Virus record (IMG/VR): IMGVR_UViG_3300037882_003354
Span: 124,001 to 188,000 of that record
Length of the DNA stretch: 64,000 nucleotides
Strand: one strand, 5' to 3'
The notes beneath the pieces are model-generated. The model saw only the letters and a program-made list of their open reading frames with translations. It had not been told where the DNA came from and did not search any database. Position numbers and translations under genes: made by a program. Below, in pieces: positions 18 to 16,822 of the stretch; positions within the stretch are counted from its first letter, which is position 1, and every line of letters begins with the position of its first letter.

Positions 18-242
18 ATGAATCACAGTCCCATTCTGCAGTGGACAGCCACTGCCGTGACACTGCTGGGCGCCATGCTCACAGCGGCAGCTCTGGATCC
101 CTGGAATGTCTACTGTCTGAATGCCGGCAGTGGCCTGTGGCTCATCTGGGCCTGGCGGGTGCGCAGCCGCAGCTTGATCGTGGTCAACGCTGGCCTGGTG
201 CTCATATACATGGCAGGCCTGGTCCGAGCCTTCTTTGCTTGA
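18..242 (+). CDS. small membrane protein
   Basis: 74 aa, three hydrophobic segments; TGA stop lies inside the next TTGACA. Confidence 0.7.
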   Translation: MNHSPILQWTATAVTLLGAMLTAAALDPWNVYCLNAGSGLWLIWAWRVRSRSLIVVNAGLVLIYMAGLVRAFFA

Positions 243-266
243 CAATCTGGATCATTGTGCTATAGT
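239..266 (+). promoter_or_regulatory. early sigma70-type promoter P1
   Basis: TTGACA-16-TATAGT with TGn extended -10. Confidence 0.8.
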
Positions 267-296
267 ACTGACATCGCAACACAACAAGGAAGACAC

Positions 297-554: not shown

Positions 555-733
555 TGACTGACTACCAGTTCTGCATGATCCTCCGCGATGGCGGCCATCG
601 GATCATCACCGTGGGGGCGGAGAATCAGGATCACGCCCATGACATGTTCCATCGCATCTACGGCACGGACCTGCCGGCCTTCCTGTACCAGCACCCGCCG
701 GCCTTTGTTCAAGAACTGGTTGACAACTCCTGA
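551..733 (+). CDS. hypothetical early protein
   Basis: 60 aa ORF coupled to the upstream stop (GTGATG). Confidence 0.65.
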   Translation: MMTDYQFCMILRDGGHRIITVGAENQDHAHDMFHRIYGTDLPAFLYQHPPAFVQELVDNS

Positions 734-747
734 ACTCCTGCTATAAT
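720..747 (+). promoter_or_regulatory. early promoter P2
   Basis: TTGACA-16-TATAAT. Confidence 0.85.
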
Positions 748-780
748 ACATTCATCACAACGCAACAGGGGAAGCAGAGC

Positions 781-1053
781 ATGGCCTACGTATTGATCAA
801 TCGCAACCAGAAGGGACGGCAAGAAGCCATCCGCACCTATGCCACCTACAAGGGTGCCCTGATTGGCATGCGCGTGAGCAACCGCAACGCCGGCTGGACT
901 CGTAGCAGCCGCTGCTACCTGGGCTACTGCGCCATGGAATGGGGTCATGATGCCGCTGGCGACTACGAGTACGCACCCTACGCCATCATGCACGAGTTTG
1001 ATTACAAGATGCGGCATCAGCCTCTTGACACGGTGCGTGGGGCCGCTGTATAA
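781..1053 (+). CDS. hypothetical early protein
   Basis: AGGGG SD, 90 aa ORF. Confidence 0.75.
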   Translation: MAYVLINRNQKGRQEAIRTYATYKGALIGMRVSNRNAGWTRSSRCYLGYCAMEWGHDAAGDYEYAPYAIMHEFDYKMRHQPLDTVRGAAV

Positions 1054-1054
1054 T
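1025..1054 (+). promoter_or_regulatory. early promoter P3
   Basis: TTGACA-18-TATAAT-acacac-ATG. Confidence 0.85.
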
Positions 1055-1060
1055 ACACAC

Positions 1061-1255
1061 ATGAAGACACAACAGGAGCAACAGATGAATGACTTTAGAC
1101 GGGCCATGCGAGTCATGTGCTCTGCATGTCAAGAATTTCACCAGGTGAAGGATGTGAAATTCATTGACATCCAGGAAGATTATGCCGGCAGGGATCTGAT
1201 GACCTTTGAGTGCTCGGTGACCAGCACCCAACAAAAGGCCTACGTGCTGGGCTGA
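1061..1255 (+). CDS. small zinc-ribbon-like protein (dual start 1061/1085)
   Basis: CSAC...FEC motif; ATG at predicted +1 and in-frame SD-led ATG. Confidence 0.7.
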   Translation: MKTQQEQQMNDFRRAMRVMCSACQEFHQVKDVKFIDIQEDYAGRDLMTFECSVTSTQQKAYVLG

Positions 1256-1259
1256 TCAC

Positions 1260-1287
1260 TTGACAATTGGTGCCATGATGTTATAAT
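1260..1287 (+). promoter_or_regulatory. early promoter P4
   Basis: TTGACA-16-TATAAT-acacac-ATG. Confidence 0.85.
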
Positions 1288-1293
1288 ACACAC

Positions 1294-1518
1294 ATGATGA
1301 CACAACTGGAGCAACACATGAATGAATTCGTAGCATCGGCAGTGGATCGGGTGGAGAGCAAGTTCCTGGTCCACTGCGACACTGATGTTCCAGCCGAGAT
1401 CCTGGCTGATGTCCTGCACTATTGCCGGGTCAAAGGCATTGACTTCGACAACGAGCTGCGCCTGGCTCGTGACTACGTGGAGGCAGAACTGGCTGAGTTT
1501 TTCGGTGTAGGTGCTTGA
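1294..1518 (+). CDS. hypothetical early protein (dual start 1294/1318)
   Basis: 74 aa; ILADVLHYC...GIDFD helical motif; stop inside next TTGACA. Confidence 0.75.
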   Translation: MMTQLEQHMNEFVASAVDRVESKFLVHCDTDVPAEILADVLHYCRVKGIDFDNELRLARDYVEAELAEFFGVGA

Positions 1519-1542
1519 CAACCGGAGCGATCCTGCTATAAT
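1515..1542 (+). promoter_or_regulatory. early promoter P5
   Basis: TTGACA-16-TATAAT-gctgac-ATG. Confidence 0.85.
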
Positions 1543-1548
1543 GCTGAC

Positions 1549-1875
1549 ATGGACAACGCAAAGGAGCAGCAAATGGAACTGAACACACGGCAGGTACGGG
1601 CAATTGCATTGAAGGCAACGGACAAGCCCTTCCACACTTGGACGGACAAGACCAGCGACTACGATGACGCACGACGCAGCGTGGTGTGGAGTTTTTATGG
1701 CACGGGTGGGGCACAGGCATTGTTTGACCTGTTGCAGGCAGAGTTTGCACGGCTGGGCGTGACGAATAAGTTGACGCTCACGGGCACTGCCTATGAATAC
1801 GTGCGCGTGATTGCACCCCTGGGCAATCTGCCTGCCCTGCGCTGGCAGGACTTGCCTGAAGTTTATCCCATCTGA
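1549..1875 (+). CDS. hypothetical early protein (dual start 1549/1573)
   Basis: 108 aa ORF, AAGGAG internal SD. Confidence 0.75.
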   Translation: MDNAKEQQMELNTRQVRAIALKATDKPFHTWTDKTSDYDDARRSVVWSFYGTGGAQALFDLLQAEFARLGVTNKLTLTGTAYEYVRVIAPLGNLPALRWQDLPEVYPI

Positions 1876-1889
1876 TGGTGGCAGGGTGC

Positions 1890-1918
1890 TTGACAACACC
1901 AGCACCCTGCGCTATAAT
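1890..1918 (+). promoter_or_regulatory. early promoter P6 with inverted repeat across -35
   Basis: TTGACA-17-TATAAT; GCAGGGTGCT 1881-1890 / AGCACCCTGC 1901-1910. Confidence 0.85.
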
Positions 1919-1924
1919 ACACAC

Positions 1925-2149
1925 ATGACGACGCAACAACAGGAGAGGCAAATGACGGTGACCCAATACCTGATGACCCAGGGCTGCGGCCAGGAAGAGA
2001 TCCGCACCATCCTGGAAGAGATGGAGTATCACAGGCAGCAGGAGCTCTGGGTGTCCCAGGACCCCCACGGCGATGAGGGCATGGACTGGGATGCGTTTGA
2101 TGACGCGCAGGCCGAAAGGCTCTGGCCAGAAGCAGAAGATTTTGCTTGA
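1925..2149 (+). CDS. small acidic protein (dual start 1925/1952)
   Basis: MTTQQQERQM start; D/E-rich; stop inside next TTGACA. Confidence 0.7.
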   Translation: MTTQQQERQMTVTQYLMTQGCGQEEIRTILEEMEYHRQQELWVSQDPHGDEGMDWDAFDDAQAERLWPEAEDFA

Positions 2150-2173
2150 CATTCCAAACGAATGCGTTATAAT
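2146..2173 (+). promoter_or_regulatory. early promoter P7
   Basis: TTGACA-16-TATAAT. Confidence 0.85.
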
Positions 2174-2206
2174 GCAGACTTACACACAACGAAAGGCGAC
2201 ACTAAC

Positions 2207-3085
2207 ATGGCAAAGGCAGCAATGAAGAACCCCAGCAAAGGCACCAGCACCGTGCTGGAATTTGACACCGACGCTATCAAAAGGCGTGAACAAGAAGTGG
2301 CACTGGAGAGCGATGAGGACATCATCAATCGCCTGCGCGAGCGCTTTGACATCCTGACTGACATGACCAAGGCGGTCAAAGAAGGCCATGTGCGGGCCAT
2401 GATTGTAAGCGGTCCACCGGGCGTGGGCAAGAGCTACGGCGTGGAGGCTGTGCTGGAGAAGGACGACTTGTTCAACAAGTTGGCAGAACGCAAGCCCAAG
2501 TACGAGATCGTCAAGGGCGCCATGAGCAGCATTGGACTCTACGCCAAGCTCTACGAGTTCAGCAAGGCTGGCAACGTGGTGGTGTTCGACGACTGCGACA
2601 GCATCCTGATGGAGGACCTGAGCCTGAACATCCTGAAGGGTGCACTGGACAGCAGCAGCCGCCGCTTCATCAGCTGGAACACCGACAGCCGCATCCTGCG
2701 CGCCGAGGGCATTCCCGACCGCTTTGAGTTCTGTGCAGGTGCCATCTTCATCACCAACATCAAGTTTGAGCACGTGCGCAGCAAGAAGCTCAAGGACCAC
2801 CTGGATGCACTGGAGTCGCGCTGCCACTACATTGACCTGCAGATGGACACCACACGCGAGAAGATCCTGCGCATCCGGCAGATCATCAACGATGGCATGC
2901 TGGAGAAGTACGAGTTCAGTCAGCCGGACCTGGTGCGTGACGAGCTGGTGGAGTTCGTGGTGGACAACCAGGACCGACTGCGTGAGCTGAGCCTGCGCAT
3001 GGTGCTCAAGTTGGCGGACCTGCGCAAGAGCTTCCCCACCAATTGGCAAGCCATGGCCAAGACCACTTGTATGCGTCGGTCATGA
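2207..3085 (+). CDS. AAA+ family P-loop ATPase
   Basis: Walker A GPPGVGKS, Walker B VVVFDDCD, sensor FITN, arginine-finger-like ALESRC. Confidence 0.85.
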   Translation: MAKAAMKNPSKGTSTVLEFDTDAIKRREQEVALESDEDIINRLRERFDILTDMTKAVKEGHVRAMIVSGPPGVGKSYGVEAVLEKDDLFNKLAERKPKYEIVKGAMSSIGLYAKLYEFSKAGNVVVFDDCDSILMEDLSLNILKGALDSSSRRFISWNTDSRILRAEGIPDRFEFCAGAIFITNIKFEHVRSKKLKDHLDALESRCHYIDLQMDTTREKILRIRQIINDGMLEKYEFSQPDLVRDELVEFVVDNQDRLRELSLRMVLKLADLRKSFPTNWQAMAKTTCMRRS

Positions 3086-3360
3086 TCAACCAACTGCTCT
3101 ACGCCACCTGGGTGGAGCGCCTGGTGGCGCTCACCGCCCAGGCCCTGGTGCTGTGGTGGGTGGGTGCCCAACTGGAGGGAGATCACTTCTGGGCCTTGTG
3201 CAGCATCCTGGCCATGACCCTGGTGTTGGAGTACTTGGCCTGGCAACAGGGCATTGCACAAGGCATGGCCATCTACGCGGGACTGACACCACAGCAACAG
3301 GCTGACGTCAGTGCCATCTTAAACTCAACCGACGACACAACTGAAGAAGAACAAAAATGA
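3082..3360 (+). CDS. membrane protein
   Basis: ATGA overlap with the ATPase stop; two hydrophobic helices. Confidence 0.7.
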   Translation: MINQLLYATWVERLVALTAQALVLWWVGAQLEGDHFWALCSILAMTLVLEYLAWQQGIAQGMAIYAGLTPQQQADVSAILNSTDDTTEEEQK

Positions 3361-3587
3361 ACAACCCATGCACCTGGATTGGCCCATACGGACTAAAGTG
3401 TACATGTGACCGACCGGCCATGCCCACCCGCAACTATTGTGAGGATCACATCTGGTTGATCTATCAGAAGGGCACCAACCTACGCCGACGACACAAGGAC
3501 ATTCGAGTGGCTAATGCCGTGTGGGACTGGGAGAGCGAGTTCAACTCAGCGGTGCAGGAACTGGTGGAAGAAGGCTTCGAAGTTTAA
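3357..3587 (+). CDS. small Cys/His-containing protein
   Basis: CTW..C.C..NYCEDH; ATGA overlap. Confidence 0.7.
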   Translation: MNNPCTWIGPYGLKCTCDRPAMPTRNYCEDHIWLIYQKGTNLRRRHKDIRVANAVWDWESEFNSAVQELVEEGFEV

Positions 3588-3595
3588 AAGATTGC

Positions 3596-3623
3596 TTGAC
3601 ATCTCTTGTGATTGTGCTATACT
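3596..3623 (+). promoter_or_regulatory. early promoter P8
   Basis: TTGACA-16-TATACT. Confidence 0.85.
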
Positions 3624-3653
3624 ACATTCATCAACAACGCAAAGGAAGACGAA

Positions 3654-4268
3654 ATGCCTAACTGGTGCAACAATCGAGTGACACTGACCCACACAGACCC
3701 TGTGATGATTGACCGTGCTGTCAAGGCCTACCAACAGGGTCGCTTGCTGAACGAGTTCATCCCTGTGCCACAGGAACTCATGGACACCCAGGCCAGCCCG
3801 GGCACCCAGGAGGAGGCCCTGGTGGCCCAGCGCACAGCCAATACAGAGAAGTTTGGTTTCGCCGACTGGTATACCTTCTGTCTGACCAACTGGGGCACCA
3901 AGTGGGATGTGGGTGGCGATGGTGAGTTCATCGAGCAAGACTCGCCCAATGAGGTCGAACTGGCTTTTGACAGCGCCTGGGCACCACCCATTGCGGCCTA
4001 CGAGCAACTGGAGGGCCTGGGTTTTGAGATTGAAGCCTATTACTTTGAACCCGGCATGGCCTTCTGCGGCGTCTGGACCAATGAGTTCGGTGACGACTAC
4101 TGTGAATACACAGACATGACACCGCAAGAGATCCGTGATCAGATGCCCGAGATTGACGAACGCTTCTGCATCAGCGACATGCTGGAGGAGTGGGCACGAG
4201 AAGAGGCTGAGAATGAAGAGAACCTGGAGATTGACCTGGACGGCGGCTTGAGCGCCACCAACGAATAA
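3654..4268 (+). CDS. DUF1281/YubB ferredoxin-like domain protein
   Basis: MPNWCNN, W..C..NWGTKWD and FDSAWAPP motifs characteristic of this family. Confidence 0.75.
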   Translation: MPNWCNNRVTLTHTDPVMIDRAVKAYQQGRLLNEFIPVPQELMDTQASPGTQEEALVAQRTANTEKFGFADWYTFCLTNWGTKWDVGGDGEFIEQDSPNEVELAFDSAWAPPIAAYEQLEGLGFEIEAYYFEPGMAFCGVWTNEFGDDYCEYTDMTPQEIRDQMPEIDERFCISDMLEEWAREEAENEENLEIDLDGGLSATNE

Positions 4269-4271
4269 AGA

Positions 4272-4300
4272 TTGACAGGGGCTCAGTCCCCTGTTATAAT
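4272..4300 (+). promoter_or_regulatory. early promoter P9 with hairpin in spacer
   Basis: TTGACA-17-TATAAT; ACAGGGG 4275-4281 / CCCCTGT 4288-4294. Confidence 0.85.
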
Positions 4301-4329
4301 ACGACATCAACACAACAAAAGGAAACAAG

Positions 4330-4719
4330 ATGGCAACTCGCGGCGTAATTGGGGTCATGTATGGTGAAGTCTGCAAGAGCATTTATGTGCACTGGGATTC
4401 GTATCTGGGCGGTGTGGGTGCCACGCTGCTGGAGAACTACGGACGAGTGGGTGCTAGCGAACTCATTGCCTGCGGCAACGTCAGCAGCCTGGGTGCCACC
4501 ATTCCGGACACCCGGTTCTTTGACCAAGAAACCGAGTGCCTGACTGCCAACAACTTTGAAGAGTTCCTGGATCAGTGGGGCGACTCCTGGATAGAGTACA
4601 TGTACATCATGGGCATGGATGAGCAGTGGTATGTGGTGCGTGACAACCGCAGCCTGCAACTGTTGAGCGAGGCCCTGGCGGCCGAACGGGCCTTGGACAA
4701 CATGAAGGAGCAAGCATAA
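4330..4719 (+). CDS. conserved phage hypothetical protein
   Basis: MATRxxIG...SIYVHWDSY motif typical of a widespread phage early family; AAAGGA SD. Confidence 0.75.
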   Translation: MATRGVIGVMYGEVCKSIYVHWDSYLGGVGATLLENYGRVGASELIACGNVSSLGATIPDTRFFDQETECLTANNFEEFLDQWGDSWIEYMYIMGMDEQWYVVRDNRSLQLLSEALAAERALDNMKEQA

Positions 4720-4931
4720 TGGGTCTGGAAAAGGTGGTGCTCAGGGACTTGGAAGATGAATCGGTCTATGACGTCTATTGGTCATCAGGCCGCTTGTACT
4801 ACATGAACGAATGGGACTTGCCCACCATTCGTCAGGTGCTCAGGGATCGTTACCCATTGGTGAACCAGGACATCCTGGTGGCTGATACAGATGCTGTCAT
4901 GTTCGATCCCTATGCAACTGTCAACAGCTAG
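4719..4931 (+). CDS. hypothetical protein
   Basis: TAATG coupling, AAGGAG SD. Confidence 0.7.
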   Translation: MGLEKVVLRDLEDESVYDVYWSSGRLYYMNEWDLPTIRQVLRDRYPLVNQDILVADTDAVMFDPYATVNS

Positions 4932-4969
4932 ACACCCTAAAACCCCGCTGCAAGGGTGGGCAGAATCGG

Positions 4970-4998
4970 TTGACAAGACTGAATTTACATGTTAAACT
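4970..4998 (+). promoter_or_regulatory. early promoter P10
   Basis: TTGACA-17-TAAACT. Confidence 0.65.
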
Positions 4999-5049
4999 AA
5001 TGACACTGGACCAATGATGGTTCGGTATTACACACACAAAGGAAATTTT

Positions 5050-5451
5050 ATGACTGACAAGACTTATACCCACGCTGGCGTGAGCACTTTTGAAGGCGTG
5101 ATCAAGCCGCGCTTCACCTGCAATCCCAATCGTGTGAAGACCATGATCAAGGAAGGGCACACTGCCATCGACTTCCTGGAGCTCTTGAAGCCCATGACCA
5201 CGCAGGAGGCCATCGCTTACTTGCTCAAGATCAATTACGGTGACGACGCCACTCGTGCGGCACTCACGGCAGCCCTGGACCGTCGCGTGCCGGCTGTCAA
5301 GGCACCCAAGACCGTCCGGGTCAAGGCTGAGAAGAAGGTCAAGCCCACCTTGTCGTCCATCGCTGCACGTGGCCCCCGCAATCCTGTGACCCAGGTCACC
5401 CGAGCTGAGGTTGAAGCCCAGCTGGCCGATCTGGACGACGCGCCCTTCTAA
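5050..5451 (+). CDS. basic hypothetical protein
   Basis: AAAGGA SD; K/A/P-rich C-half, ends DLDDAPF (SSB-like acidic tip). Confidence 0.75.
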   Translation: MTDKTYTHAGVSTFEGVIKPRFTCNPNRVKTMIKEGHTAIDFLELLKPMTTQEAIAYLLKINYGDDATRAALTAALDRRVPAVKAPKTVRVKAEKKVKPTLSSIAARGPRNPVTQVTRAEVEAQLADLDDAPF

Positions 5452-5456
5452 GCACC

Positions 5457-5669
5457 ATGAGCCAACTGCTGTTCGTTGGCCGTCCCTGGACGGTGTTTGA
5501 CGCCCACAACCGTCAGCACCGCCAGTGGTTCGCGGAGTTCCAGCGCCGCCGCTCCTGGGGCTCCTGTCCTGTCAGGTTCATCATCCCGGACGACGCTGGG
5601 GACTTATTGAGTATGATCCAGGGCCGGTTAATAGAATATTATACCAATAAAGAGTTTAAAATCAGTTGA
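5457..5669 (+). CDS. hypothetical protein
   Basis: 70 aa, FD..N..HR..F..F....SWG.CP motif; stop inside next TTGACA. Confidence 0.75.
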   Translation: MSQLLFVGRPWTVFDAHNRQHRQWFAEFQRRRSWGSCPVRFIIPDDAGDLLSMIQGRLIEYYTNKEFKIS

Positions 5670-5720
5670 CATCCTGACAGATACTGTATACCATAGTATC
5701 AACTGTTTGAATACAGTATC
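5666..5720 (+). promoter_or_regulatory. promoter P11 with candidate operator
   Basis: TTGACA-17-TACCAT; perfect IR GATACTGTAT 5680-5689 / ATACAGTATC 5711-5720. Confidence 0.65.
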
Positions 5721-5736
5721 ACATAAGGATATCAAA

Positions 5737-5982
5737 ATGAGTTTAATCAAATTAACCAAGCCGCAAAACCAATTTCTAGAAGAGCACCTTCGTGGAACTG
5801 GACGCACCCTGAGCGCACGTCAGGCACGGGCCGCCTACGGCATCCAGAACCTCCGCGCTCGCATGACGGAACTTCGTCACGCTGGGTTGCGAGTCACCAC
5901 TGACATCAACAGTCAGGGCCGCACAGTGTATGCCATCAGCAGCCGTGACGTCACCGGCAGTCGTGCTGCCCGCTTTGCCTGA
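5737..5982 (+). CDS. winged helix-turn-helix DNA-binding protein
   Basis: LSARQARAAYGIQNLRARMTELRHAGLRV pattern of HTH_39-like wHTH; TAAGGA SD. Confidence 0.7.
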   Translation: MSLIKLTKPQNQFLEEHLRGTGRTLSARQARAAYGIQNLRARMTELRHAGLRVTTDINSQGRTVYAISSRDVTGSRAARFA

Positions 5983-6200
5983 TGCATGACATCACAGTCG
6001 CCGTGCAGTTGACTGGGCAGGATCTGGAGTTCCTGGACTCGGTGTTGAAGTGTGTGATTGACACCAACACTGAGCAGGAGGCTGAGACACTGACCCTGCT
6101 GCGTGCCAGACTGGCCCATGCCCAGGCAGAGTTGATGAGTGCCAGGGCCATGGCCCTGGCATTAAATACTCAGTCTTATATTAAAGGAGATAGATTATGA
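5982..6200 (+). CDS. hypothetical protein
   Basis: TGATG coupling; 72 aa. Confidence 0.6.
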   Translation: MHDITVAVQLTGQDLEFLDSVLKCVIDTNTEQEAETLTLLRARLAHAQAELMSARAMALALNTQSYIKGDRL

Positions 6201-6430
6201 GCAATTTAGATACTAAAGTATCAGAAGTCACCGCGGAAGTGGTAGTCAGTCAGTTGACTGGCAAGAAGTGGTACCTGTCCAAGACACTCTGGGCCAACGT
6301 GGGCATGATTGCAGCCATCTGGTTCCAGGGCCACTTTGGAGTTGCCATGAGCGTGGAACTGCAGGCCCTAATCATGGCTGGTGTCAACATGGCACTGCGC
6401 ACCATCACCAAGGAACCTGTGGTCTGGTGA
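6197..6430 (+). CDS. small membrane protein, possibly holin-like
   Basis: GKKWYLSKTLWAN followed by two TM helices; AAGGAG SD; late-type TAAATA at 6163-6168. Confidence 0.55.
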   Translation: MSNLDTKVSEVTAEVVVSQLTGKKWYLSKTLWANVGMIAAIWFQGHFGVAMSVELQALIMAGVNMALRTITKEPVVW

Positions 6431-6431
6431 G

Positions 6432-6460
6432 TTGACAAGAACCGCATCACCTGCTATACT
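6432..6460 (+). promoter_or_regulatory. early promoter P12
   Basis: TTGACA-17-TATACT. Confidence 0.8.
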
Positions 6461-6488
6461 GACTCCACATTAACACATGGAGTTGGAA

Positions 6489-6575
6489 ATGCAGCAGGTG
6501 AAATTGGTTCTGGGTTGGATCGCCGTCATTGTCCTGTCAGCCTTCATGGGTGTTTTACTCGCCTGGAGGGGTTGA
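6489..6575 (+). CDS. 28 aa single-TM micro-protein (not in ORF track)
   Basis: MQQVKLVLGWIAVIVLSAFMGVLLAWRG; GGAG SD; own promoter; stop inside next TTGACA. Confidence 0.65.
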   Translation: MQQVKLVLGWIAVIVLSAFMGVLLAWRG

Positions 6576-6600
6576 CAGGACTCTTCTCTGACTGTAGAAT
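6572..6600 (+). promoter_or_regulatory. early promoter P13
   Basis: TTGACA-17-TAGAAT-acacac-ATG. Confidence 0.8.
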
Positions 6601-6606
6601 ACACAC

Positions 6607-6807
6607 ATGAAATACAACATCCAGCAAGAGACCACCCAGTGGGCCAGCCCCACCACTCCCAATCATGTGTACATTTTTGAAGGCACGGTGAGCGGCCGTG
6701 GGGCCAAGGCCATTGGCTACGTCAAGGCTGGCACCACTCACGTGCAGCGATTCCGTGTGCCCATGATGATGGACACTCGCGGCAGGACCTTTGTTGCCTT
6801 GAAATGA
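6607..6807 (+). CDS. hypothetical protein, leaderless
   Basis: ATG 6 nt after -10, no SD, no nearby alternative start. Confidence 0.75.
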   Translation: MKYNIQQETTQWASPTTPNHVYIFEGTVSGRGAKAIGYVKAGTTHVQRFRVPMMMDTRGRTFVALK

Positions 6808-6992
6808 GAAACAGCAGATACGGTTTTGACACCCTGCCAGCCATCCCATTCACCAGTGCGCCCTGGGTGCCTGTGGGTGAAGCCACTGAGATCACCTGGG
6901 CTCAGGCCTACTCACAGTGGAGTCAGGCGCAACGGGTGCCCGTGACACCACAGGACTTCTTGAAGGCCTTCAGGCTTGACTCCGACAGATGA
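6804..6992 (+). CDS. hypothetical protein
   Basis: ATGA overlap; 62 aa. Confidence 0.6.
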   Translation: MRNSRYGFDTLPAIPFTSAPWVPVGEATEITWAQAYSQWSQAQRVPVTPQDFLKAFRLDSDR

Positions 6993-7004
6993 TGCTGCTA
7001 GAAT
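6976..7004 (+). promoter_or_regulatory. early promoter P14
   Basis: TTGACT-17-TAGAAT. Confidence 0.75.
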
Positions 7005-7030
7005 AGATGCAAGACAACAGGAGTAGACGA

Positions 7031-7177
7031 ATGCCATACACATTGATCACTCCACTGGGACAGATTTACACTTTCTATCTCCAGGTGACGGCCCAGACAT
7101 TCCAGCAGGCCTACGGTGGTCACATCCTGACTGCCGATATGCTGCAGACTGAAGCCCAGCCCATACTCATCAACTAA
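7031..7177 (+). CDS. 48 aa hypothetical protein (not in ORF track)
   Basis: CAGGAG SD; MPYTLITPLGQIYTFY...FQQAYGGHI. Confidence 0.65.
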   Translation: MPYTLITPLGQIYTFYLQVTAQTFQQAYGGHILTADMLQTEAQPILIN

Positions 7178-7188
7178 AAGGAAACCCT

Positions 7189-7434
7189 ATGAAAAACTCC
7201 ACTCTTGCCGCCTGGCGCACCGCCGGCTGGGTCTTGGCCATGGTGGCCTTGTGCCTGATTGCTCACCTGACATTCACCCTGGTGCCCGCCCAGGTGCTGC
7301 TCAACAGCCTGTATGCCCTGATGGGCATTGGCGCCGTGGTGGGCCTGTATCATATAGCACTGGCTCAGATTGAGTACCAGCAGGTGGCACGTGACATCGC
7401 CCAGCGTGAAAAGTTCCCCAACATCCAGGAATAA
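7189..7434 (+). CDS. membrane protein
   Basis: AAAGGA SD; two TM helices. Confidence 0.7.
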   Translation: MKNSTLAAWRTAGWVLAMVALCLIAHLTFTLVPAQVLLNSLYALMGIGAVVGLYHIALAQIEYQQVARDIAQREKFPNIQE

Positions 7435-7437
7435 GTC

Positions 7438-7465
7438 TTGACAAATCGTCAGAAGTCGCTATAAT
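7438..7465 (+). promoter_or_regulatory. early promoter P15
   Basis: TTGACA-16-TATAAT. Confidence 0.85.
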
Positions 7466-7472
7466 GGATCAC

Positions 7473-7718
7473 ATGACGACGCAACAACAGGAGCAGAACA
7501 TGGGCTACACCGTAATCGCAGACAAGTATCAAATGGACCAGATGCGCGACAATTACGGTCCACGCCGGGGCTTGGAAGGGCCTTTCAACTTCAGCGGCCG
7601 GGTTCTGTATTACGACGTCCAGGAGGGCAAGTACTATGACCCTCGCAGCGATTTTTATGTGGAGCAGGATGAAATGAACCTGATCAACGCCCGGCTCATG
7701 AACACGCTCAGGGGCTGA
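7473..7718 (+). CDS. conserved phage hypothetical protein (dual start 7473/7500)
   Basis: GLEGPF...GRVLYYD..EGKYYDP..DFY motif. Confidence 0.75.
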   Translation: MTTQQQEQNMGYTVIADKYQMDQMRDNYGPRRGLEGPFNFSGRVLYYDVQEGKYYDPRSDFYVEQDEMNLINARLMNTLRG

Positions 7719-7719
7719 C

Positions 7720-8070
7720 ATGAGCCGGAACACTCGCATCCATGCACACCGCATGATCCAGGTGATCAAGACTGGTGCCCTGGACACACAGAGCACTGAG
7801 TTTGACGCATGGCAGACGCCCACCACAGCCACCTGGCACATCCTGATCCCTGTGGACACGGCCGCCCGACTGCAGGCCTATCGTGACTGGGTCATGAGCG
7901 CCTGCCAGGATGAGACCGAGAACGTCTACGCTGAGGACGACTTGTTCCAGGCGGGCGAGCCCGTGAGCACGGTCATCGTCAATCACGGGCGTGATCACAT
8001 CGCCCAATTGGATGAGTGGCTGGCGCTCTTGGAGCAGACAGGCTGGGAAGTGTCAGTGGATGCCTGGTAA
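7720..8070 (+). CDS. hypothetical protein
   Basis: 116 aa ORF immediately after the previous stop. Confidence 0.7.
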   Translation: MSRNTRIHAHRMIQVIKTGALDTQSTEFDAWQTPTTATWHILIPVDTAARLQAYRDWVMSACQDETENVYAEDDLFQAGEPVSTVIVNHGRDHIAQLDEWLALLEQTGWEVSVDAW

Positions 8071-8073
8071 GGC

Positions 8074-8101
8074 TTGACACGGCCTGAGAAGTCGCTATAA
8101 T
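8074..8101 (+). promoter_or_regulatory. early promoter P16
   Basis: TTGACA-16-TATAAT-gaacac-ATG. Confidence 0.85.
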
Positions 8102-8107
8102 GAACAC

Positions 8108-8212
8108 ATGAAGACAAAAGACCTACTGTTTGAAATTGAAGTCATCCTCATGCTCATCGTGGGCTTTGGATTGTTTTTCGCACTCCTTTACATGGCAGGA
8201 ATGACACTATGA
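8108..8212 (+). CDS. 34 aa leaderless single-TM micro-protein (not in ORF track)
   Basis: MKTKDLLFEIEVILMLIVGFGLFFALLYMAGMTL; ATG at predicted +1; ATGA overlap with next gene. Confidence 0.65.
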   Translation: MKTKDLLFEIEVILMLIVGFGLFFALLYMAGMTL

Positions 8213-8445
8213 GCAAGATGAGTGAACTATTTTACGACCTCCTGGAGATGCTGGAACTGGGCCGCACTGATTCAGAAATCAGCCTGGCCACCGGCTTCCC
8301 GCTGGAAGCCATTGCCATCTGGCGGGCAGATGCTGAACTGCGCCCTGAGAGCGCCAGTGAAGAGAGCGACTGGCAAACCGACACCGGGCCTGGTGATGAA
8401 GAGGATGGCTGGGACGATGACGAATGGTTCATCCAGGCCGAGTGA
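8209..8445 (+). CDS. highly acidic small protein
   Basis: short HTH-like N-half, D/E/W-rich tail. Confidence 0.7.
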   Translation: MSKMSELFYDLLEMLELGRTDSEISLATGFPLEAIAIWRADAELRPESASEESDWQTDTGPGDEEDGWDDDEWFIQAE

Positions 8446-8450
8446 CAGAC

Positions 8451-8768
8451 ATGCGGCCACCACCCCAGAACGTGCCCACCCTGACTGACGTGGTGCATGA
8501 GCCACCACCCAGGTGGGTGGTGCATCAGACTCTGAGCGACCACCAGCTGCCCAAACTCAGCTGCATCATGCTGCACCTGCGACTGCATGAACAGTATTAT
8601 CAGGTGCAGCTGAGCACCTCACGTGGCATCTGGGCCATGATTCGCCTGGCCCTGGTGCCCCTGTCGGAGATTCAACAGGCCAACGACCTGTTGCGCATGA
8701 AGATCCAGAAGTACGGTGACATCCGAGGATATCGCCTGCTGGTGGCGGGTTGCAGGAAAAACACTTGA
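8451..8768 (+). CDS. hypothetical protein
   Basis: fills the gap to the next promoter; stop inside TTGACA. Confidence 0.6.
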   Translation: MRPPPQNVPTLTDVVHEPPPRWVVHQTLSDHQLPKLSCIMLHLRLHEQYYQVQLSTSRGIWAMIRLALVPLSEIQQANDLLRMKIQKYGDIRGYRLLVAGCRKNT

Positions 8769-8792
8769 CATCCTGACGGAAGTCGCTATAAT
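8765..8792 (+). promoter_or_regulatory. early promoter P17
   Basis: TTGACA-16-TATAAT-gatcac-ATG. Confidence 0.85.
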
Positions 8793-8798
8793 GATCAC

Positions 8799-9239
8799 AT
8801 GACGACGCAACAGGAGCACCAGATGGCTAAATTGAACAAAGAACAGCGCGAAGCCCTGGCCGTGGCCGATGCCCAGGCTGAACAGGCCCGGCTGCAGTCC
8901 CTGGTGGACTCCTATCCCCAGCGCCTGATGGACGCTCTGAGCCGGGCCCTGGCCCAGGGTGCTCATGCGGATGTGGATGCCCCGGGCATGTTCTTCAGTG
9001 TGGTGTTCCGTGACTCAGGGCGTGTGATCAATGTGTCCTATGCATGCGGCGGGCCCATGGATGAGGAGTATCTGCAGGACCTGCTGTTCGAGGTGGCCCA
9101 CCTGGAGTTCCTGCGTGAGGAAGAACGCCGCCTGGAACAGGTGCGAGTCACGGCCCTGGCCAAACTGTCGGATGAAGAAATCAAGGTCTTGGGGCTCCAG
9201 TGCGCCGCCCGGGGCACCTGGAACCGCGACTGCTATTGA
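8799..9239 (+). CDS. hypothetical protein (dual start 8799/8823)
   Basis: coiled coil ending ALAKLSDEEIKVLGL. Confidence 0.75.
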   Translation: MTTQQEHQMAKLNKEQREALAVADAQAEQARLQSLVDSYPQRLMDALSRALAQGAHADVDAPGMFFSVVFRDSGRVINVSYACGGPMDEEYLQDLLFEVAHLEFLREEERRLEQVRVTALAKLSDEEIKVLGLQCAARGTWNRDCY

Positions 9240-9253
9240 GCCGGGAGCACCTG

Positions 9254-9469
9254 ATGTACGCACTATTCGCTGGAGATGTATTCTACCCACAGGGCGGCTG
9301 GCGGGACCTGCAGGGAGTGTACCAGACCCTGACACAGGCACAGGAGGCCCTGGCTCGCATACAATCTGAGCCTGATGAGCACGGTGACGTGCCCGATGCC
9401 TTCGAATGGGCTCACGTGGTGGACCTGCGCCGTGCCCATCTGGTGTGGGACTGGCACCGTCAGGATTGA
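9254..9469 (+). CDS. conserved phage hypothetical protein
   Basis: GGGAG SD; LFAG..FYP.GGW.D...WAHVVD motif. Confidence 0.7.
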   Translation: MYALFAGDVFYPQGGWRDLQGVYQTLTQAQEALARIQSEPDEHGDVPDAFEWAHVVDLRRAHLVWDWHRQD

Positions 9470-9493
9470 CATTCAGCACAGGGTGTGTATAAT
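9466..9493 (+). promoter_or_regulatory. early promoter P18
   Basis: TTGACA-16-TATAAT-gcactc-ATG. Confidence 0.85.
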
Positions 9494-9499
9494 GCACTC

Positions 9500-9578
9500 A
9501 TGCGTTCGAACAGTCTGACTGGGGGTGGACGGCGAGGCTGGGCCACATGATGGCCCTCCCTTTCCCTGAAAGAAACAG
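9500..9578 (+). ncRNA. candidate small RNA or 16-aa leaderless peptide
   Basis: strong promoter followed by only 79 nt before the next promoter; hairpin GGGCCA-catga-TGGCCC. Confidence 0.35.
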
Positions 9579-9606
9579 TTGACAAGACGGCACAAGGCGC
9601 TAGAAT
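9579..9606 (+). promoter_or_regulatory. early promoter P19
   Basis: TTGACA-16-TAGAAT. Confidence 0.8.
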
Positions 9607-9613
9607 ACATGAC

Positions 9614-9820
9614 ATGACGACGCAACTTCAACTGGAGCAGAACATGGACATGAACCAACGCCGCCAACTGGCCCTCCGCGCAGCCGCAGCCTTCCGTGAA
9701 GCCTGGGCGCTCATGGACCAGGCCATTGGCTGGGACGCCAGCGGCGCCCTGGCTGAGGATGGCCTGGTCACCATCATCCACGAACTGGAGCGGCAGGAGT
9801 TCGTGGGAGTGGCGGAATAA
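9614..9820 (+). CDS. hypothetical protein (dual start 9614/9644)
   Basis: 68 aa ORF, GGAG internal SD. Confidence 0.7.
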   Translation: MTTQLQLEQNMDMNQRRQLALRAAAAFREAWALMDQAIGWDASGALAEDGLVTIIHELERQEFVGVAE

Positions 9821-9827
9821 GGAGCAC

Positions 9828-10058
9828 ATGATGAAGCGTCAATACAATAAATGGAGTGAGATCCTGAAGGGTGATCTATCCGCCCAGGATCGTCGAAAGA
9901 TTCGGAACTCTGTCACACTATACGTTCAGACCCCCAAGGGCTGGAACAGCGTTGCCGTATGCTATACCCGACAAGAAGCTGAAGAGTTCAAAGAACGAAT
10001 TGTTCGGGGCAGGTTCACACTCAAATACGAGCACGAAAAAGTCTTTAAAATTGGTTGA
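9828..10058 (+). CDS. basic hypothetical protein
   Basis: TAAGGAG SD; visibly more AT-rich than neighbours; stop inside TTGACA. Confidence 0.7.
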   Translation: MMKRQYNKWSEILKGDLSAQDRRKIRNSVTLYVQTPKGWNSVAVCYTRQEAEEFKERIVRGRFTLKYEHEKVFKIG

Positions 10059-10082
10059 CATTCCGGCAGAAGGCGGTATAAT
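10055..10082 (+). promoter_or_regulatory. early promoter P20
   Basis: TTGACA-16-TATAAT-acacac-ATG. Confidence 0.85.
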
Positions 10083-10088
10083 ACACAC

Positions 10089-10532
10089 ATGACGACGCAA
10101 CAGGAGCCAACAATGACTGAAGCCACTTTCCCCAGCTGGGACGACATGACGGACCTGCAGCAGGCCCAGTGCATGTTCTGGGACATGTACAAGGACGCCC
10201 ACGGCTTCCGTCCCCGTGGCGTGGACACCAGCGCCTGGACCCTGGAGGACTTCAGCCGGGAGTTTGACTTCCTGGGGCGGGTGATTGAGCAGCAGGAACA
10301 GGAGCGCATCCTGAAGGAGCAGCAGGCCATCACCCACTTTGAGCGCCGCCTGCAGGAGTTGATGAAACTGGGCGCCCAGGACCGTGAGGACGCCATCCGC
10401 TGGTGCCTGGATGCGGACGATGCCCGGGACCTGGAGGACTTGGCCTGGCGCAACGAACTGCCCTGGAACTACCTCCGGGTTCAGCCCCTGCGTGGTGACG
10501 GCCGCTACGACGCTGAAGTCAGCGACGAATAA
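10089..10532 (+). CDS. conserved phage hypothetical protein (dual start 10089/10113)
   Basis: WDMYKDAHGFRPR motif. Confidence 0.8.
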   Translation: MTTQQEPTMTEATFPSWDDMTDLQQAQCMFWDMYKDAHGFRPRGVDTSAWTLEDFSREFDFLGRVIEQQEQERILKEQQAITHFERRLQELMKLGAQDREDAIRWCLDADDARDLEDLAWRNELPWNYLRVQPLRGDGRYDAEVSDE

Positions 10533-10536
10533 AGGC

Positions 10537-10564
10537 TTGACATTCCGGCTGCGGCCGCTATAAT
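10537..10564 (+). promoter_or_regulatory. early promoter P21
   Basis: TTGACA-16-TATAAT-acacac-ATG. Confidence 0.85.
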
Positions 10565-10570
10565 ACACAC

Positions 10571-11488
10571 ATGACGACAACTACACAGGAACGCAACATG
10601 AAGACAGGCATCATCGTATTCTCCGAAGGCAAGTGGCAGGGTCGTGACGAACAAGGCCGCATCTTGCTCACCAGCGTGGACCAGGACCGTGTGCGCCGTG
10701 TGCTCATGAAAAAGCACGAGTGCACCAACGTCCAGATCCTGGATCAAGCCCAGTCAGAGGCTGCCGAGACCCAGAGCCAGTGGCCCATCAATCAGCGTTT
10801 CGACTTCCTGAGCCAGCTGGTGCGCATGGTGGGACAAGGCAACGCGGTGAGCTTGATTGTCACGGGTCCCGGCGGCCTGGGCAAGACCCACACGGTGCGT
10901 GAGGGACTCCTGGCATGTGGCCTCAAAGAAGCCACCGTGGACGGCGTGAATGGCGAAGGCACCTTCAAGATCATCAAGGGCTACAGCACCGCCAAGGGCT
11001 TGTACCGCGAGCTGTATCAGAACCAGGACAGCGTGTTGGTGTTTGACGACTGCGATGATGTGCTCAAGGATCCCACTGCACTCAACCTGCTGAAAGGCGC
11101 ACTGGATTCGTACGACAAGCGCATCATCAGCTGGAATGCAGACATGCGTGACGACGACCTGGAGCGCAGTTTCCAGTTCAACGGCCGCGTGATCTTCATC
11201 AGCAATCTCAACCGCGATCGCATGGACACGGCACTCAAGACCCGAGCCTACTGCGTGGACCTGGCCATGAGCTTGAGCCAGAAGATCGAGCGCATGCAGG
11301 TGCTGGCTGCGTCGGATGACTTCATGCCACGTGCCCGCCGTGAGCACAAGGCCGACGCCCTGGCTCTGATCCAAGAGCTGGGCCCACGCTGCCGTGAAGT
11401 CAGCCTGCGCACCCTGCAGGCCGTCACCCGCATCCGTGCTGCGGGCGGCGCCTGGCGTGAACTGGCAGAGTACACCCTGACCAATTGA
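10571..11488 (+). CDS. AAA+ family P-loop ATPase, paralog of 2207..3085 (dual start 10571/10598)
   Basis: GPGGLGKT, VLVFDDCD, LNLLKGALDS, RIISWN, FISN, REVSLR. Confidence 0.85.
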   Translation: MTTTTQERNMKTGIIVFSEGKWQGRDEQGRILLTSVDQDRVRRVLMKKHECTNVQILDQAQSEAAETQSQWPINQRFDFLSQLVRMVGQGNAVSLIVTGPGGLGKTHTVREGLLACGLKEATVDGVNGEGTFKIIKGYSTAKGLYRELYQNQDSVLVFDDCDDVLKDPTALNLLKGALDSYDKRIISWNADMRDDDLERSFQFNGRVIFISNLNRDRMDTALKTRAYCVDLAMSLSQKIERMQVLAASDDFMPRARREHKADALALIQELGPRCREVSLRTLQAVTRIRAAGGAWRELAEYTLTN

Positions 11489-11514
11489 CACACCAGGGCT
11501 CCTGCCCTTATAAT
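11485..11514 (+). promoter_or_regulatory. early promoter P22
   Basis: TTGACA-18-TATAAT-gcattc-ATG; IR CAGGGCTCCTG 11494-11504 / CAGGAGCCCTG 11530-11540. Confidence 0.8.
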
Positions 11515-11520
11515 GCATTC

Positions 11521-12255
11521 ATGATGACCCAGGAGCCCTGCATGCTGCAAGAACGAATCCAACTGGTCCAAGCAAAGATCCAGACCCTGATCACCCAGTG
11601 GTCTGCCCAGACTGGGCAGACCCTGCCTGACATCCAGGTGAAGTTTGATCTGCGCGGCCGGGTGGCTGGCTGGGCCGGGTCACGTGGTGGCCGGTACTTC
11701 ATGCGCTTCAACACCGACATGATGCAGAACGCCGCATGGACGCATGTGATCAACAACACCGTGCCACACGAGCTGGCCCACGTCATCTGCTTTGTTCAGG
11801 GCACGGACTCAGGACATGGCCGTGTATGGGTCAGAACCTGCCGCAGCCTGGGCGGTAATGGAGAGCGTTGCCACTCAGAGGCTGTCACATACGCCAAAGG
11901 CAAGACCTATGTGTACACCACCCACACGGGCCGCACCATCCACCTGAGCAGCATCAAGCATAAGAAGATCCAGCAGGGCGCATCCTATACGGGACGCAAC
12001 GGCCTGGGCCGCATAGACAGCCGGTGTGCATATCATGTGCTGGGGCAGACTGTACAGCCCGTGACCCGTGTGACGCCACCCGTGGCAGCACCGCGTGTGG
12101 TCTCGGGCAGCCGTGCGGCGCAGGTGCGCGCCTGGATAGTGCAGGGTCTGACCCAGGCTCAGGTTTATGAGCTGTGCCGGAGCCAGCTGGCTCAGACTGA
12201 CGCTCAGGCCCGACAGTATTGGAGGACCGAGAGTGCCAAGGTGGGCCGTGTGTGA
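11521..12255 (+). CDS. SprT-like zinc metalloprotease
   Basis: LRGRVAG, VPHELAH (HExxH), HG..W....R.LG, RCH motifs of the SprT family. Confidence 0.85.
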   Translation: MMTQEPCMLQERIQLVQAKIQTLITQWSAQTGQTLPDIQVKFDLRGRVAGWAGSRGGRYFMRFNTDMMQNAAWTHVINNTVPHELAHVICFVQGTDSGHGRVWVRTCRSLGGNGERCHSEAVTYAKGKTYVYTTHTGRTIHLSSIKHKKIQQGASYTGRNGLGRIDSRCAYHVLGQTVQPVTRVTPPVAAPRVVSGSRAAQVRAWIVQGLTQAQVYELCRSQLAQTDAQARQYWRTESAKVGRV

Positions 12256-15335: not shown

Positions 15336-16822
15336 TCCCGCTCGGGGTTCACATCAGGCATGGTCAACATGCCGCGTATGCTGGCCGGCCGGCTGGATGC
15401 ATTGTTCTTGAACTTGTTGGCACTCATGCCCACAGTGGGATCAATGATCTCCCCAGTGGCATCGTCCACTGATGTGGTGCTGACCACGCTGGTACGCTTG
15501 AGTCCCTGATACGCACTATTACCACCGCCAGTGCTCTGCTGTGCTCGTTGTTGGCTGAAACTACTGGTGTCTTCATCCTCGTTCAAGTCTGTGATGCGCA
15601 GAGTGTCCAGGTTAAACTCCAGATCCACCTTCTGTCCCACACCACTACTGCTGCGTGTCTTCATGAACTGAATCTGATAACGACCACGTTCCTTCATGGC
15701 CCTGCTGGTAAAGATGCCAATGACATTGTCTGCTGTCATGATCTTGCTCAAGCCACCTGAAATGTGACTGTGGTCAAACTCAATCTCCTCCACTGCACTG
15801 CGATTCAACTGACTGGCAGTGACTGTGACACATTGCGTCTCCATGGCCAAGTTTCTGATCTCCTCACTCACGTATTTGTCCTTGACGAACAGATCACTGG
15901 GCGATACCTTTACTGACAGTGGCATCATCAAATCCAGGTAATCTATGAGCAAAACATCAGGTTTTACGCCTTTTTTCACCTGATATTCTTTAAGATATGC
16001 TCTGATATCGTTACAATTCTTGCCACTTGGCATGTACTTGATCTGTATGCTGCCCGCCTTCTTGCCCAGCATCTTGACCTTGAGTTCCACGTCATCAATG
16101 TTCTTGAAGATCTCGCGTGTGCTGATGCCTGTGGTCATGCTGTCCAGTCGCATGGCCACCAGACCCTCGCTCAACTCGAATGTCAGGTACAACACATTTA
16201 GACCCAGTTGCGCCCAGTTGACTCCCATGTTGGCCAGGAACAGACTCTTGCCGCCACCTGATCCTGCACAGAAGATGTTGAGCTCGCCGCGGTTAAATCC
16301 GCCATACAACTTGCGATCAATGCTGGGCCAGCCTGTGCTGATCTGCCCGTTGCCGTCTTTCAACTTGCTCAATCGACTGCGCGGATCTTCAAAGTAGTCA
16401 GTGCCCATGTCCTTGTTCAGACTGATCTGAATGGCATCCTTGATCAACTTCTCCACAGGTCCATAGTCTCCAGCCTCCAGCAGATCACTGCTCTTGATGA
16501 TGGCCCGCTCCAGGCCCTTGTGCCGGCTGAAGTTCTCAAACTCATCCATGAGCCATTCGTAGTTCTCACGGGGCAGGGTAATGGCATCGAAAGTGCTGCG
16601 TGTGGCTGCATTAACAATGCTGGCCTCGGGCATGACCTTGTATTCATCCACATACCGGTTGATAAACTCTGCGGCCGCCTGCAGACGTTGATCAAAGTTC
16701 TCATGATCAAAAATATTCTGACACCTGACAAATGTTTCAGCATCTGACAGGAACATCTCCAAATATAACTTCTGCATGGCAAAGTCATAGTTGGGTTTGA
16801 CCGCGGCTTTATTCTTCTGCAT
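15332..16822 (-). CDS. DnaB-like replicative helicase (T4 gp41-like)
   Basis: STGWPSID..LYGG, AGSGGGKS, LTFELSE, IDYLDLM, TASQLNR. Confidence 0.92.
   Translation of the reverse strand: MQKNKAAVKPNYDFAMQKLYLEMFLSDAETFVRCQNIFDHENFDQRLQAAAEFINRYVDEYKVMPEASIVNAATRSTFDAITLPRENYEWLMDEFENFSRHKGLERAIIKSSDLLEAGDYGPVEKLIKDAIQISLNKDMGTDYFEDPRSRLSKLKDGNGQISTGWPSIDRKLYGGFNRGELNIFCAGSGGGKSLFLANMGVNWAQLGLNVLYLTFELSEGLVAMRLDSMTTGISTREIFKNIDDVELKVKMLGKKAGSIQIKYMPSGKNCNDIRAYLKEYQVKKGVKPDVLLIDYLDLMMPLSVKVSPSDLFVKDKYVSEEIRNLAMETQCVTVTASQLNRSAVEEIEFDHSHISGGLSKIMTADNVIGIFTSRAMKERGRYQIQFMKTRSSSGVGQKVDLEFNLDTLRITDLNEDEDTSSFSQQRAQQSTGGGNSAYQGLKRTSVVSTTSVDDATGEIIDPTVGMSANKFKNNASSRPASIRGMLTMPDVNPERD

Follow-up and report, generated by a model that had tools for sequence, protein, structure and literature searches.

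Regarding transcripts and structured RNAs that act near promoters or replication origins, the ColE1/pBR322 system is one of the closest known. RNA II is made by the host polymerase from a strong promoter and contains a structured 5′ domain and a G-rich segment that forms a persistent hybrid, while a nearby DnaA box helps to load the helicase. RNA II is about 550 nt long, is cut by RNase H and is controlled by the antisense RNA I. The element described here is comparable by analogy only; its conserved part is about 37 nt, shares no sequence or fold with RNA II and, in its relatives, faces a whole cluster of DnaA boxes or other repeats, and no hybrid has been shown. In phage T4 oriF/oriG and the T7 primary origin, function depends on a promoter that fires into a non-coding, easily opened region, and the transcript primes or activates replication; those origins have no conserved structured RNA element and use phage-specific promoters, whereas the present family uses consensus sigma-70 promoters and host DnaA boxes. 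Lambda oop RNA is a short promoter-driven RNA beside the origin that is transcribed against the flow of the neighbouring genes, as are most members of the present family, but oop is a terminated 77-nt antisense RNA to cII, has no sequence or structure similarity to the element, and most members of the family lack a terminator. HK022 putL/putR are structured RNAs located right after early promoters in two copies on opposite strands (PMC9378689); put is about 70 nt with two long stems, binds the polymerase zinc-binding domain and is followed by long operons, whereas the present motif is a 3-bp hairpin or pseudoknot followed mostly by non-coding DNA. Small H-type pseudoknot riboswitch aptamers (preQ1-I, guanidine-III) are similar in size and have conserved loop bases, and the present motif may likewise form a compact pseudoknot, although no Rfam family matches its core and no regulated gene follows in most members.

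The locus lies in a stretch of 64,000 nucleotides (hereafter the window), which corresponds to bases 124,001-188,000 of a 322,512-bp virus record with direct terminal repeats (designated G000; individual loci, contigs and strains in the comparisons carry L numbers). The phage carries 11 tRNAs, ten of them at 302-307 kb, and a permuted tmRNA of the betaproteobacterial type (139.5 bits; tag AANDDAYLMAA by ARAGORN); a relative (L021) carries a tmRNA too. Near-identical DNA occurs in freshwater and lake metagenomes from 13 studies. This is therefore an uncultured freshwater jumbo phage, probably of a betaproteobacterium. The first 11,500 nt of the window are an early-type region that holds 16 perfect or near-perfect TTGACA-N16-18-TATAAT promoters on the plus strand, each heading a one- or two-gene cassette. 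The pattern TTGACA-N15-19-TANAAT has 18 matches in the window against 0.17 expected, so the promoters are far beyond chance.

The initial annotation had described a consensus promoter driving 79 nt that contain a 16-codon ORF but no real gene, a GGGCCA/TGGCCC hairpin and a pyrimidine tract that resembles an anti-Shine-Dalgarno (anti-SD) sequence and could also pair with an upstream stretch, and had inferred an early small RNA that, speculatively, would fit a phage relying on leaderless mRNAs. Its observation is confirmed, as every listed feature is present (Table). Its interpretation is partly supported: the cassette is a promoter-driven non-coding unit, but the anti-SD role is not supported, and what is conserved is the first 37 nt of the predicted transcript (the core), not the hairpin or the pyrimidine tract. 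The promoter matches the consensus at 12 of 12 positions; the transcription start is inferred from spacing and was not measured. Folding and covariation had been suggested beforehand as ways of examining the RNA. The minimum free energy is -25.7 kcal/mol, with z = -0.40 (71 nt) and -0.02 (82 nt) against shuffled sequences, and hence the fold as such is not exceptional. The hairpin appears in the minimum-free-energy fold but is specific to this lineage, is not followed by a U-run and, with its C/U tail, was not called as an intrinsic terminator.

Table. Coordinates of the promoter cassette and of other features of the phage genome
Sequence	Position	Strand	Feature
Window	9466-9493	+	Sigma-70-type promoter (-35 TTGACA 9466-9471; 16-nt spacer; -10 TATAAT 9488-9493)
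Window	9500	+	Predicted +1 (A), 79 nt from 9500 to 9578
Window	9500-9550	+	16-codon ORF MRSNSLTGGGRRGWAT; ATG 9500-9502, 7 nt after the -10; TGA 9548-9550
Window	9501-9537	+	Conserved core motif
Window	9501-9503	+	5′ flank UGC, the S1 5′ strand in the family
Window	9504-9513	+	Invariant loop GUUCGAACAG
Window	9514-9518	+	Linker UCUGA; first 3 nt are the S1 3′ strand in the family
Window	9519-9532	+	G-rich block CUGGGGGUGGACGG
Window	9521-9528	+	Segment GGGGGTGG
Window	9533-9537	+	CGAGG
Window	9540-9556	+	Local hairpin GGGCCA-CAUGA-UGGCCC (GGGCCA 9540-9545; loop 9546-9550; TGGCCC 9551-9556)
Window	9554-9566	+	Pyrimidine tract CCCTCCCTTTCCC
Window	9554-9572	+	Pyrimidine tract CCCUCCCUUUCCC (9554-9566), overlapping a possible mini-hairpin CUUUC-CCU-GAAAG (9560-9572)
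Window	9579-9606	+	Next promoter (TTGACA-16-TAGAAT), which bounds the cassette
Window	9614-9820		ORF headed by the promoter at 9579-9606
Window	720-11514	+	Region with 16 promoters of this type
Window	10571-11488	+	AAA-like ATPase gene
Window	11545-12255	+	SprT-like protein gene
Window	15596-16342	-	DnaB_C-type helicase gene
G000	119694-119652	-	Copy 2 of the motif (paralog of window 9501-9543)
G000	118950-119650		Array of ATACTC/GAGTAT hexamers (L002)
G000	119146-119229		tRNA-Leu(UAA), flanked by the array
G000	119073		Consensus promoter of tRNA-Leu(UAA)
G000	45244-45616		Permuted tmRNA (L211 372-743, minus strand)
Window	239-280		Second promoter and leader class
G000	119809, 120288, 122072, 122612		Second promoter and leader class

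A search of the whole genome revealed a second copy (copy 2) 13.8 kb away on the other strand, which is 38/43 identical and also lies just downstream of a promoter (TTGACG-16-TATAAT); only these two copies exist in the genome. A covariance model (R1) scores it at 62.8 bits (E = 9e-16). Pattern scans then recovered about 25 true relatives in IMG/VR contigs of 5-350 kb and at least 120 stretches in metagenome contigs, most of them freshwater and a few marine or estuarine. Other jumbo phages carry one to three copies. The same pattern has no match in one genome each of 185,579 bacterial and archaeal species, and BLAST against about 50,000 isolate phage records gave only chance hits. In Rfam 15, no hit was found in the whole window; at E <= 10 on the 201 nt of 9440-9640 only two chance hits appeared, both outside the core, and in 14 member loci the only hits were tRNA and tmRNA elsewhere in those loci. 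A resemblance to the glutamine riboswitch or guanidine-III was considered but has no Rfam support. As the patterns fixed many core positions, the invariance of the core is partly circular, and the independent evidence comes from the positions left free: the first pattern left the CU..GG.R.U part free, and it came back invariant, while the second left the 5′ half free and returned GUUCGAACAG with only three single-base variants. By synteny, 47 loci with the neighbouring AAA-family gene have no motif within 6 kb and five complete phages of 155-175 kb that share this gene lack the motif entirely, so that it is not universal in this group.

The family consensus is NNN-GUUCGAACAG-N′N′N′, then 1-4 nt, then CUGGGGRUGGACGG-CGAG. 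The three bases just 5′ of GUUCGAACAG pair with the three bases just 3′ of it, and these pairs form in 49, 63 and 57 of 65 distinct sequences, with two to five pair types each; the middle pair is seen as GC, UA, AU, CG and UG. The covariation score is 0.592 against 0.191 in shuffles (0 of 500 reach it) and at most 0.204 when the partners are slid, as read on an ungapped alignment anchored on the invariant loop at positions that were N in every search pattern; a 69-sequence alignment gave the same result. The element is therefore a hairpin with a 3-bp covarying stem (S1) and an invariant 10-nt loop that contains the 8-nt palindrome GUUCGAAC. The last three bases of the loop (CAG) can pair with the CUG that follows the stem and linker, and this pairing is formed in all 69 sequences with two wobble-compatible single changes, which would make a compact H-type pseudoknot. 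A different structure, in which GUUC pairs with GGAC together with a CAG/CUG hairpin, was the first to be considered and was used to build model R1. The GUUC(G)/(U)GGAC helix is preferred by RNAalifold but shows no covariation (-0.01), and natural variants break the pairs without compensation (GAUC in L079, AUUC in L088 and L089); it is therefore not claimed, and R1 served only as a search device. Members with a 25-45 nt 5′ extension carry further mini-hairpins with compensatory changes, as expected for RNA.

That relatives might show the cassette to be a decayed gene remnant had been named in advance as an outcome that would refute the small RNA proposal. The comparison showed otherwise. The 5′ 37 nt belong to a large conserved family with a covarying stem. 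The 16-codon ORF is read as incidental, not as a gene: many members have AUA, AUU or GAGG where this copy has AUG, the spacer between the two invariant blocks is 4, 5, 6 or 7 nt in 4, 62, 31 and 1 members, so that no reading frame is kept, and four of the five differences between the two copies in this genome change the residue. Regarding the features of a classical terminated small RNA gene, the window copy has its own promoter, and in the family a -10-like hexamer ends 8-11 nt before the loop in 55 of 115 members and lies further upstream in most of the rest. An intrinsic terminator, in contrast, was not called after the motif in the window, and only 6 of 98 members have one on the sense strand within 220 nt. 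Accumulation of a discrete RNA, the other point on which the proposal had been said to depend, was not tested; no RNA run contained the region, and the one metatranscriptome examined, from a sample containing it, gave no reads or contigs there, which is no evidence of silence.

The window copy is atypical. Its flanks (UGC and UCU) allow only one of the three stem pairs (C-U, G-C, U-U), and the same is true in its orthologs L092, L143 and L168, whereas copy 2 keeps the canonical stem (UGC/GCA). Its CAG/CUG pairing (9511-9513 with 9519-9521) is extended by one pair, U9514-A9518. Across three related lake strains, positions 9479-9536 nonetheless show a single change, 9525 G>A in L092, at the R position of the family, while the promoter spacer (9475, 9477 and 9478 only), the hairpin loop, the pyrimidine tract and the flanking ORFs all vary. 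The hairpin stem is kept in L092 and L168 while its loop changes. The tract is substituted at 9556 and 9557 in L092 and at 9557, 9559 and 9561 in L168, overlaps two local hairpins and is not a shared feature of the wider family, although some other members carry a loosely similar C-rich stretch (CCCCCACUCAUU-like) 40-70 nt after the core. These comparisons imply that selection acts on the core, not on the tract.

The context of the family is the strongest clue to function, and it points to replication-origin-like DNA rather than to translation control. Among 105 members, 27 have two to eight DnaA boxes within 230 nt downstream and none within 250 nt upstream. Over 642 kb of member loci, 99 of 117 boxes lie 0-250 nt downstream of the motif, corresponding to 3.9 per kb against at most 0.08 per kb in every other distance bin. 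The first box starts at +21 to +24 in 11 members and at +44 or +45 in seven, boxes are spaced by 11 bp, and the first box reads TGTGGATAA on the transcript strand in 21 of 26, later boxes often being inverted. The unwinding element and box R1 of E. coli oriC have this same order and orientation, a parallel that is a lead and was not tested here. Only about a quarter of the members have DnaA boxes; others have different short repeats downstream, and for these the designation iteron-like rests on repeated 7-mers. Many members (L003, L005, L006, L009 and others) have a near-palindromic GTTAGTNNGCNCNNACTAAC site 20-45 nt after the motif, between the motif and the DnaA boxes, which looks like a dimeric protein-binding site. 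The 130 nt after the core are mildly AT-rich compared with the locus (41.4% against 45.1% G+C, p = 3e-5). The next ORF is convergent in 47 of 72 loci, and in several well-flanked loci the unit is the only element pointing against an otherwise one-directional gene array. No protein neighbour is universal; the best is a family of ORFans of about 65-75 aa (...FK[YH]ND..C[DE]...F....[AS]D[YW][IM]..P[LI]...), the convergent gene that ends right after the DnaA-box region in 10 of 23 well-flanked member loci (L003, L005, L006, L110, L131, L134, L148, L155, L159 and L192).

In this genome, the promoter of copy 2 sits back to back with the first rightward early promoter, and its transcript enters about 450 nt of non-coding DNA with 12 ATACTC/GAGTAT hexamers against 0.22 expected, the densest such array in the genome, which runs up to a convergent tRNA-Leu. 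The window copy has no such repeats; it has one 1-mismatch DnaA box inside its own promoter and nothing downstream, and it points the same way as its neighbours. GC skew was uninformative and does not mark an origin near 119-124 kb. A DnaB-like helicase gene (DnaB_C type, 64.9 bits) lies 6 kb to the right of the window copy, and the phage has no DnaA gene of its own. A Pfam search of the flanking early ORFs gave only weak AAA, SprT-like and chance hits; the AAA-like ATPase is just under the Pfam cut-off and has about 47 relatives in IMG/VR, and the small early ORFs between these genes have no Pfam match.

Considering these features together, an origin-associated transcript (R-loop, primer or origin activation) is put forward, tentatively and at less than even confidence, as the most likely role of the family. 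The analysis itself establishes a gene-less transcription unit whose first 37 transcribed nucleotides belong to a large family of structured non-coding elements found only in phage-derived sequence (viral contigs and environmental metagenomes), the position of the element 3-4 nt after the predicted start of a strong sigma-70-type promoter in about half of the members, the lack of coding, and the directional coupling to DnaA boxes or other repeats in the non-coding DNA into which the unit usually points, against the neighbouring genes. That the repeat regions are origins, that the RNA rather than the displaced DNA strand is the active form, and how it acts are inferred. In this view, host RNA polymerase makes the RNA at, or as part of, a replication origin, and the structured 5′ end and G-rich tract would favour a persistent RNA-DNA hybrid that opens the duplex beside the initiator-binding sites or primes synthesis, or transcription itself would activate the origin; the motif would then lie where the unwinding element lies relative to the first DnaA box in bacterial oriC. 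The role rests on adjacency to DnaA boxes and repeats, as no experiment or RNA data exist for any member, and neither initiation of DNA synthesis nor an RNA-DNA hybrid or RNA-to-DNA junction was assayed. Since R-loop formation alone would not need such strict sequence conservation of loop and G-tract, a specific partner is probably still unidentified. The window copy is interpreted as a solo paralog inside the early-gene array that keeps every invariant base, has lost two of the three stem pairs and is still under purifying selection; it probably supplies the same RNA domain in trans or as the 5′ end of early transcripts, but may do something else, or nothing.

Other explanations fit part of these data. 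A trans-acting early small RNA, in which the conserved loop and G-rich tail form a handle for a host or phage factor (a protein, or another RNA through the palindromic loop) and the variable 3′ part tunes stability or targets, is possible but unlikely; it retains the initial small RNA proposal without the anti-SD part. The strong early promoter at a fixed spacing, the location of the motif at the extreme 5′ end in about half of the members, the occurrence of several paralogs with different 3′ parts in one genome (three and two in two other genomes, two here), the terminator-like hairpins and convergent genes that follow some divergent copies (L087, L089) and the conservation of the window copy without origin-like DNA beside it are in its favour. 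However, it does not explain the directional, roughly 100-fold enrichment of DnaA boxes just downstream, most members lack a sense-strand terminator, no protein co-occurs in more than 10 of 23 loci and no candidate target was identified. A DNA-level signal, in which the non-template strand opened by transcription folds into the same hairpin and is recognized by an initiator, primase or helicase loader, like single-strand initiation signals, is doubtful. Covariation does not distinguish RNA from single-stranded DNA of the same strand, the fixed helical offsets of the DnaA boxes (+23 and +45, 11-bp spacing) suggest coupling at the DNA level, and the two copies in this genome lie on opposite strands; yet a 3-bp stem is very weak for DNA, the tight link to a promoter and the predicted +1 in most members argues that the transcript matters, and the compensatory changes in the 5′ extensions are as expected for a longer RNA.

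A cis-acting RNA that modifies the transcribing polymerase (like HK022 put) or recruits an antiterminator (like a lambda nut site), so that early transcripts read through terminators, is also unlikely. A promoter-proximal structured RNA in two copies on opposite strands, at the edges of and inside the early region, would fit; HK022 putL likewise starts right at the PL transcript (PMC9378689), and the window copy is followed by early genes in the same direction. Across the family, however, the downstream DNA is mostly non-coding or holds convergent genes (47 against 25), only 1 of about 22 early promoters in this region of the genome carries the element, and the motif does not resemble the two long stem-loops of put as described in PMC9378689; read-through was not measured. 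An anti-SD-like RNA that biases translation towards leaderless mRNAs, or alternatively a leaderless 16-residue peptide gene, is very unlikely and is largely excluded by the comparisons. CCUCC does occur in the tract, an ATG sits at the predicted +1, and neighbouring cassettes show ATGs at +1 in frame with the SD-led start, but neither the tract nor the start codon and frame are conserved, and most early cassettes have a GGAG-type SD before their main ATG, so that the phage does not rely on leaderless starts alone. A more far-reaching form of the origin model, also considered unlikely, is that these phages have oriC-like origins in which the usual AT-rich unwinding element is replaced by a promoter plus a conserved pseudoknotted, G-rich RNA, with the nascent RNA or the displaced strand specifically recognized to open the origin next to the DnaA-box array, and with solo copies such as the window copy acting in trans or as extra firing sites. 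This would be a sequence-specific, RNA-driven way of firing an origin that is not described for any phage or bacterium.

Origin-linked transcripts are already known from ColE1 RNA II, the T4 and T7 origins and lambda oop, whereas a conserved pseudoknot-like RNA element at a set distance from a DnaA-box array has, to our knowledge, not been described. The sequence strings gave no hits in about 8.4 million papers and topic searches found no description, although a 2023 catalogue of more than 10,000 candidate viral RNAs (PMC10690425), whose tables were not examined, may list the motif anonymously. Replication origins of uncultured phages, above all jumbo phages, are almost unknown. This short, searchable motif, tied directionally and at fixed offsets to DnaA-box clusters and never found in cellular genomes, would therefore give a marker for candidate origins in metagenomic phage genomes, a testable case of a conserved RNA structure built into an origin and a new RNA family for covariance-model libraries. 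For this window, it turns an odd empty cassette into a member of a defined family and removes the speculative link to leaderless translation.

The early region of the genome (window 720-11514; G000 120.6-135.5 kb) shows further regularities. About 22 consensus sigma-70 promoters each head a small cassette with a conserved initial transcribed sequence (ACACACATGACGACGCAACAGGAG...ATG). Where an ATG sits at the predicted +1, the SD-led ATG downstream is in frame in 11 of 11 cases, with spacings of 18-30 nt that are all multiples of 3, and two cassettes (promoters at window 6572 and 8074) have only the +1 ATG, which may mean dual starts, leaderless and SD-led. A second promoter and leader class, present in five copies, consists of TTGACA, an extended -10 (TGnTATAGT) and the conserved leader ACTGACATTGCAACAA before a GGAG-type SD. 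In window 8765-10533, contigs of related lake strains differ by cassette-sized insertions and deletions with junctions at promoter boundaries, namely a 442-nt skip from 8811 to 9254, a 246-nt skip from 9822 to 10069 and a 140-nt insert between 9460 and 9466, suggesting cassette shuffling by recombination between the repeated promoter and leader sequences.
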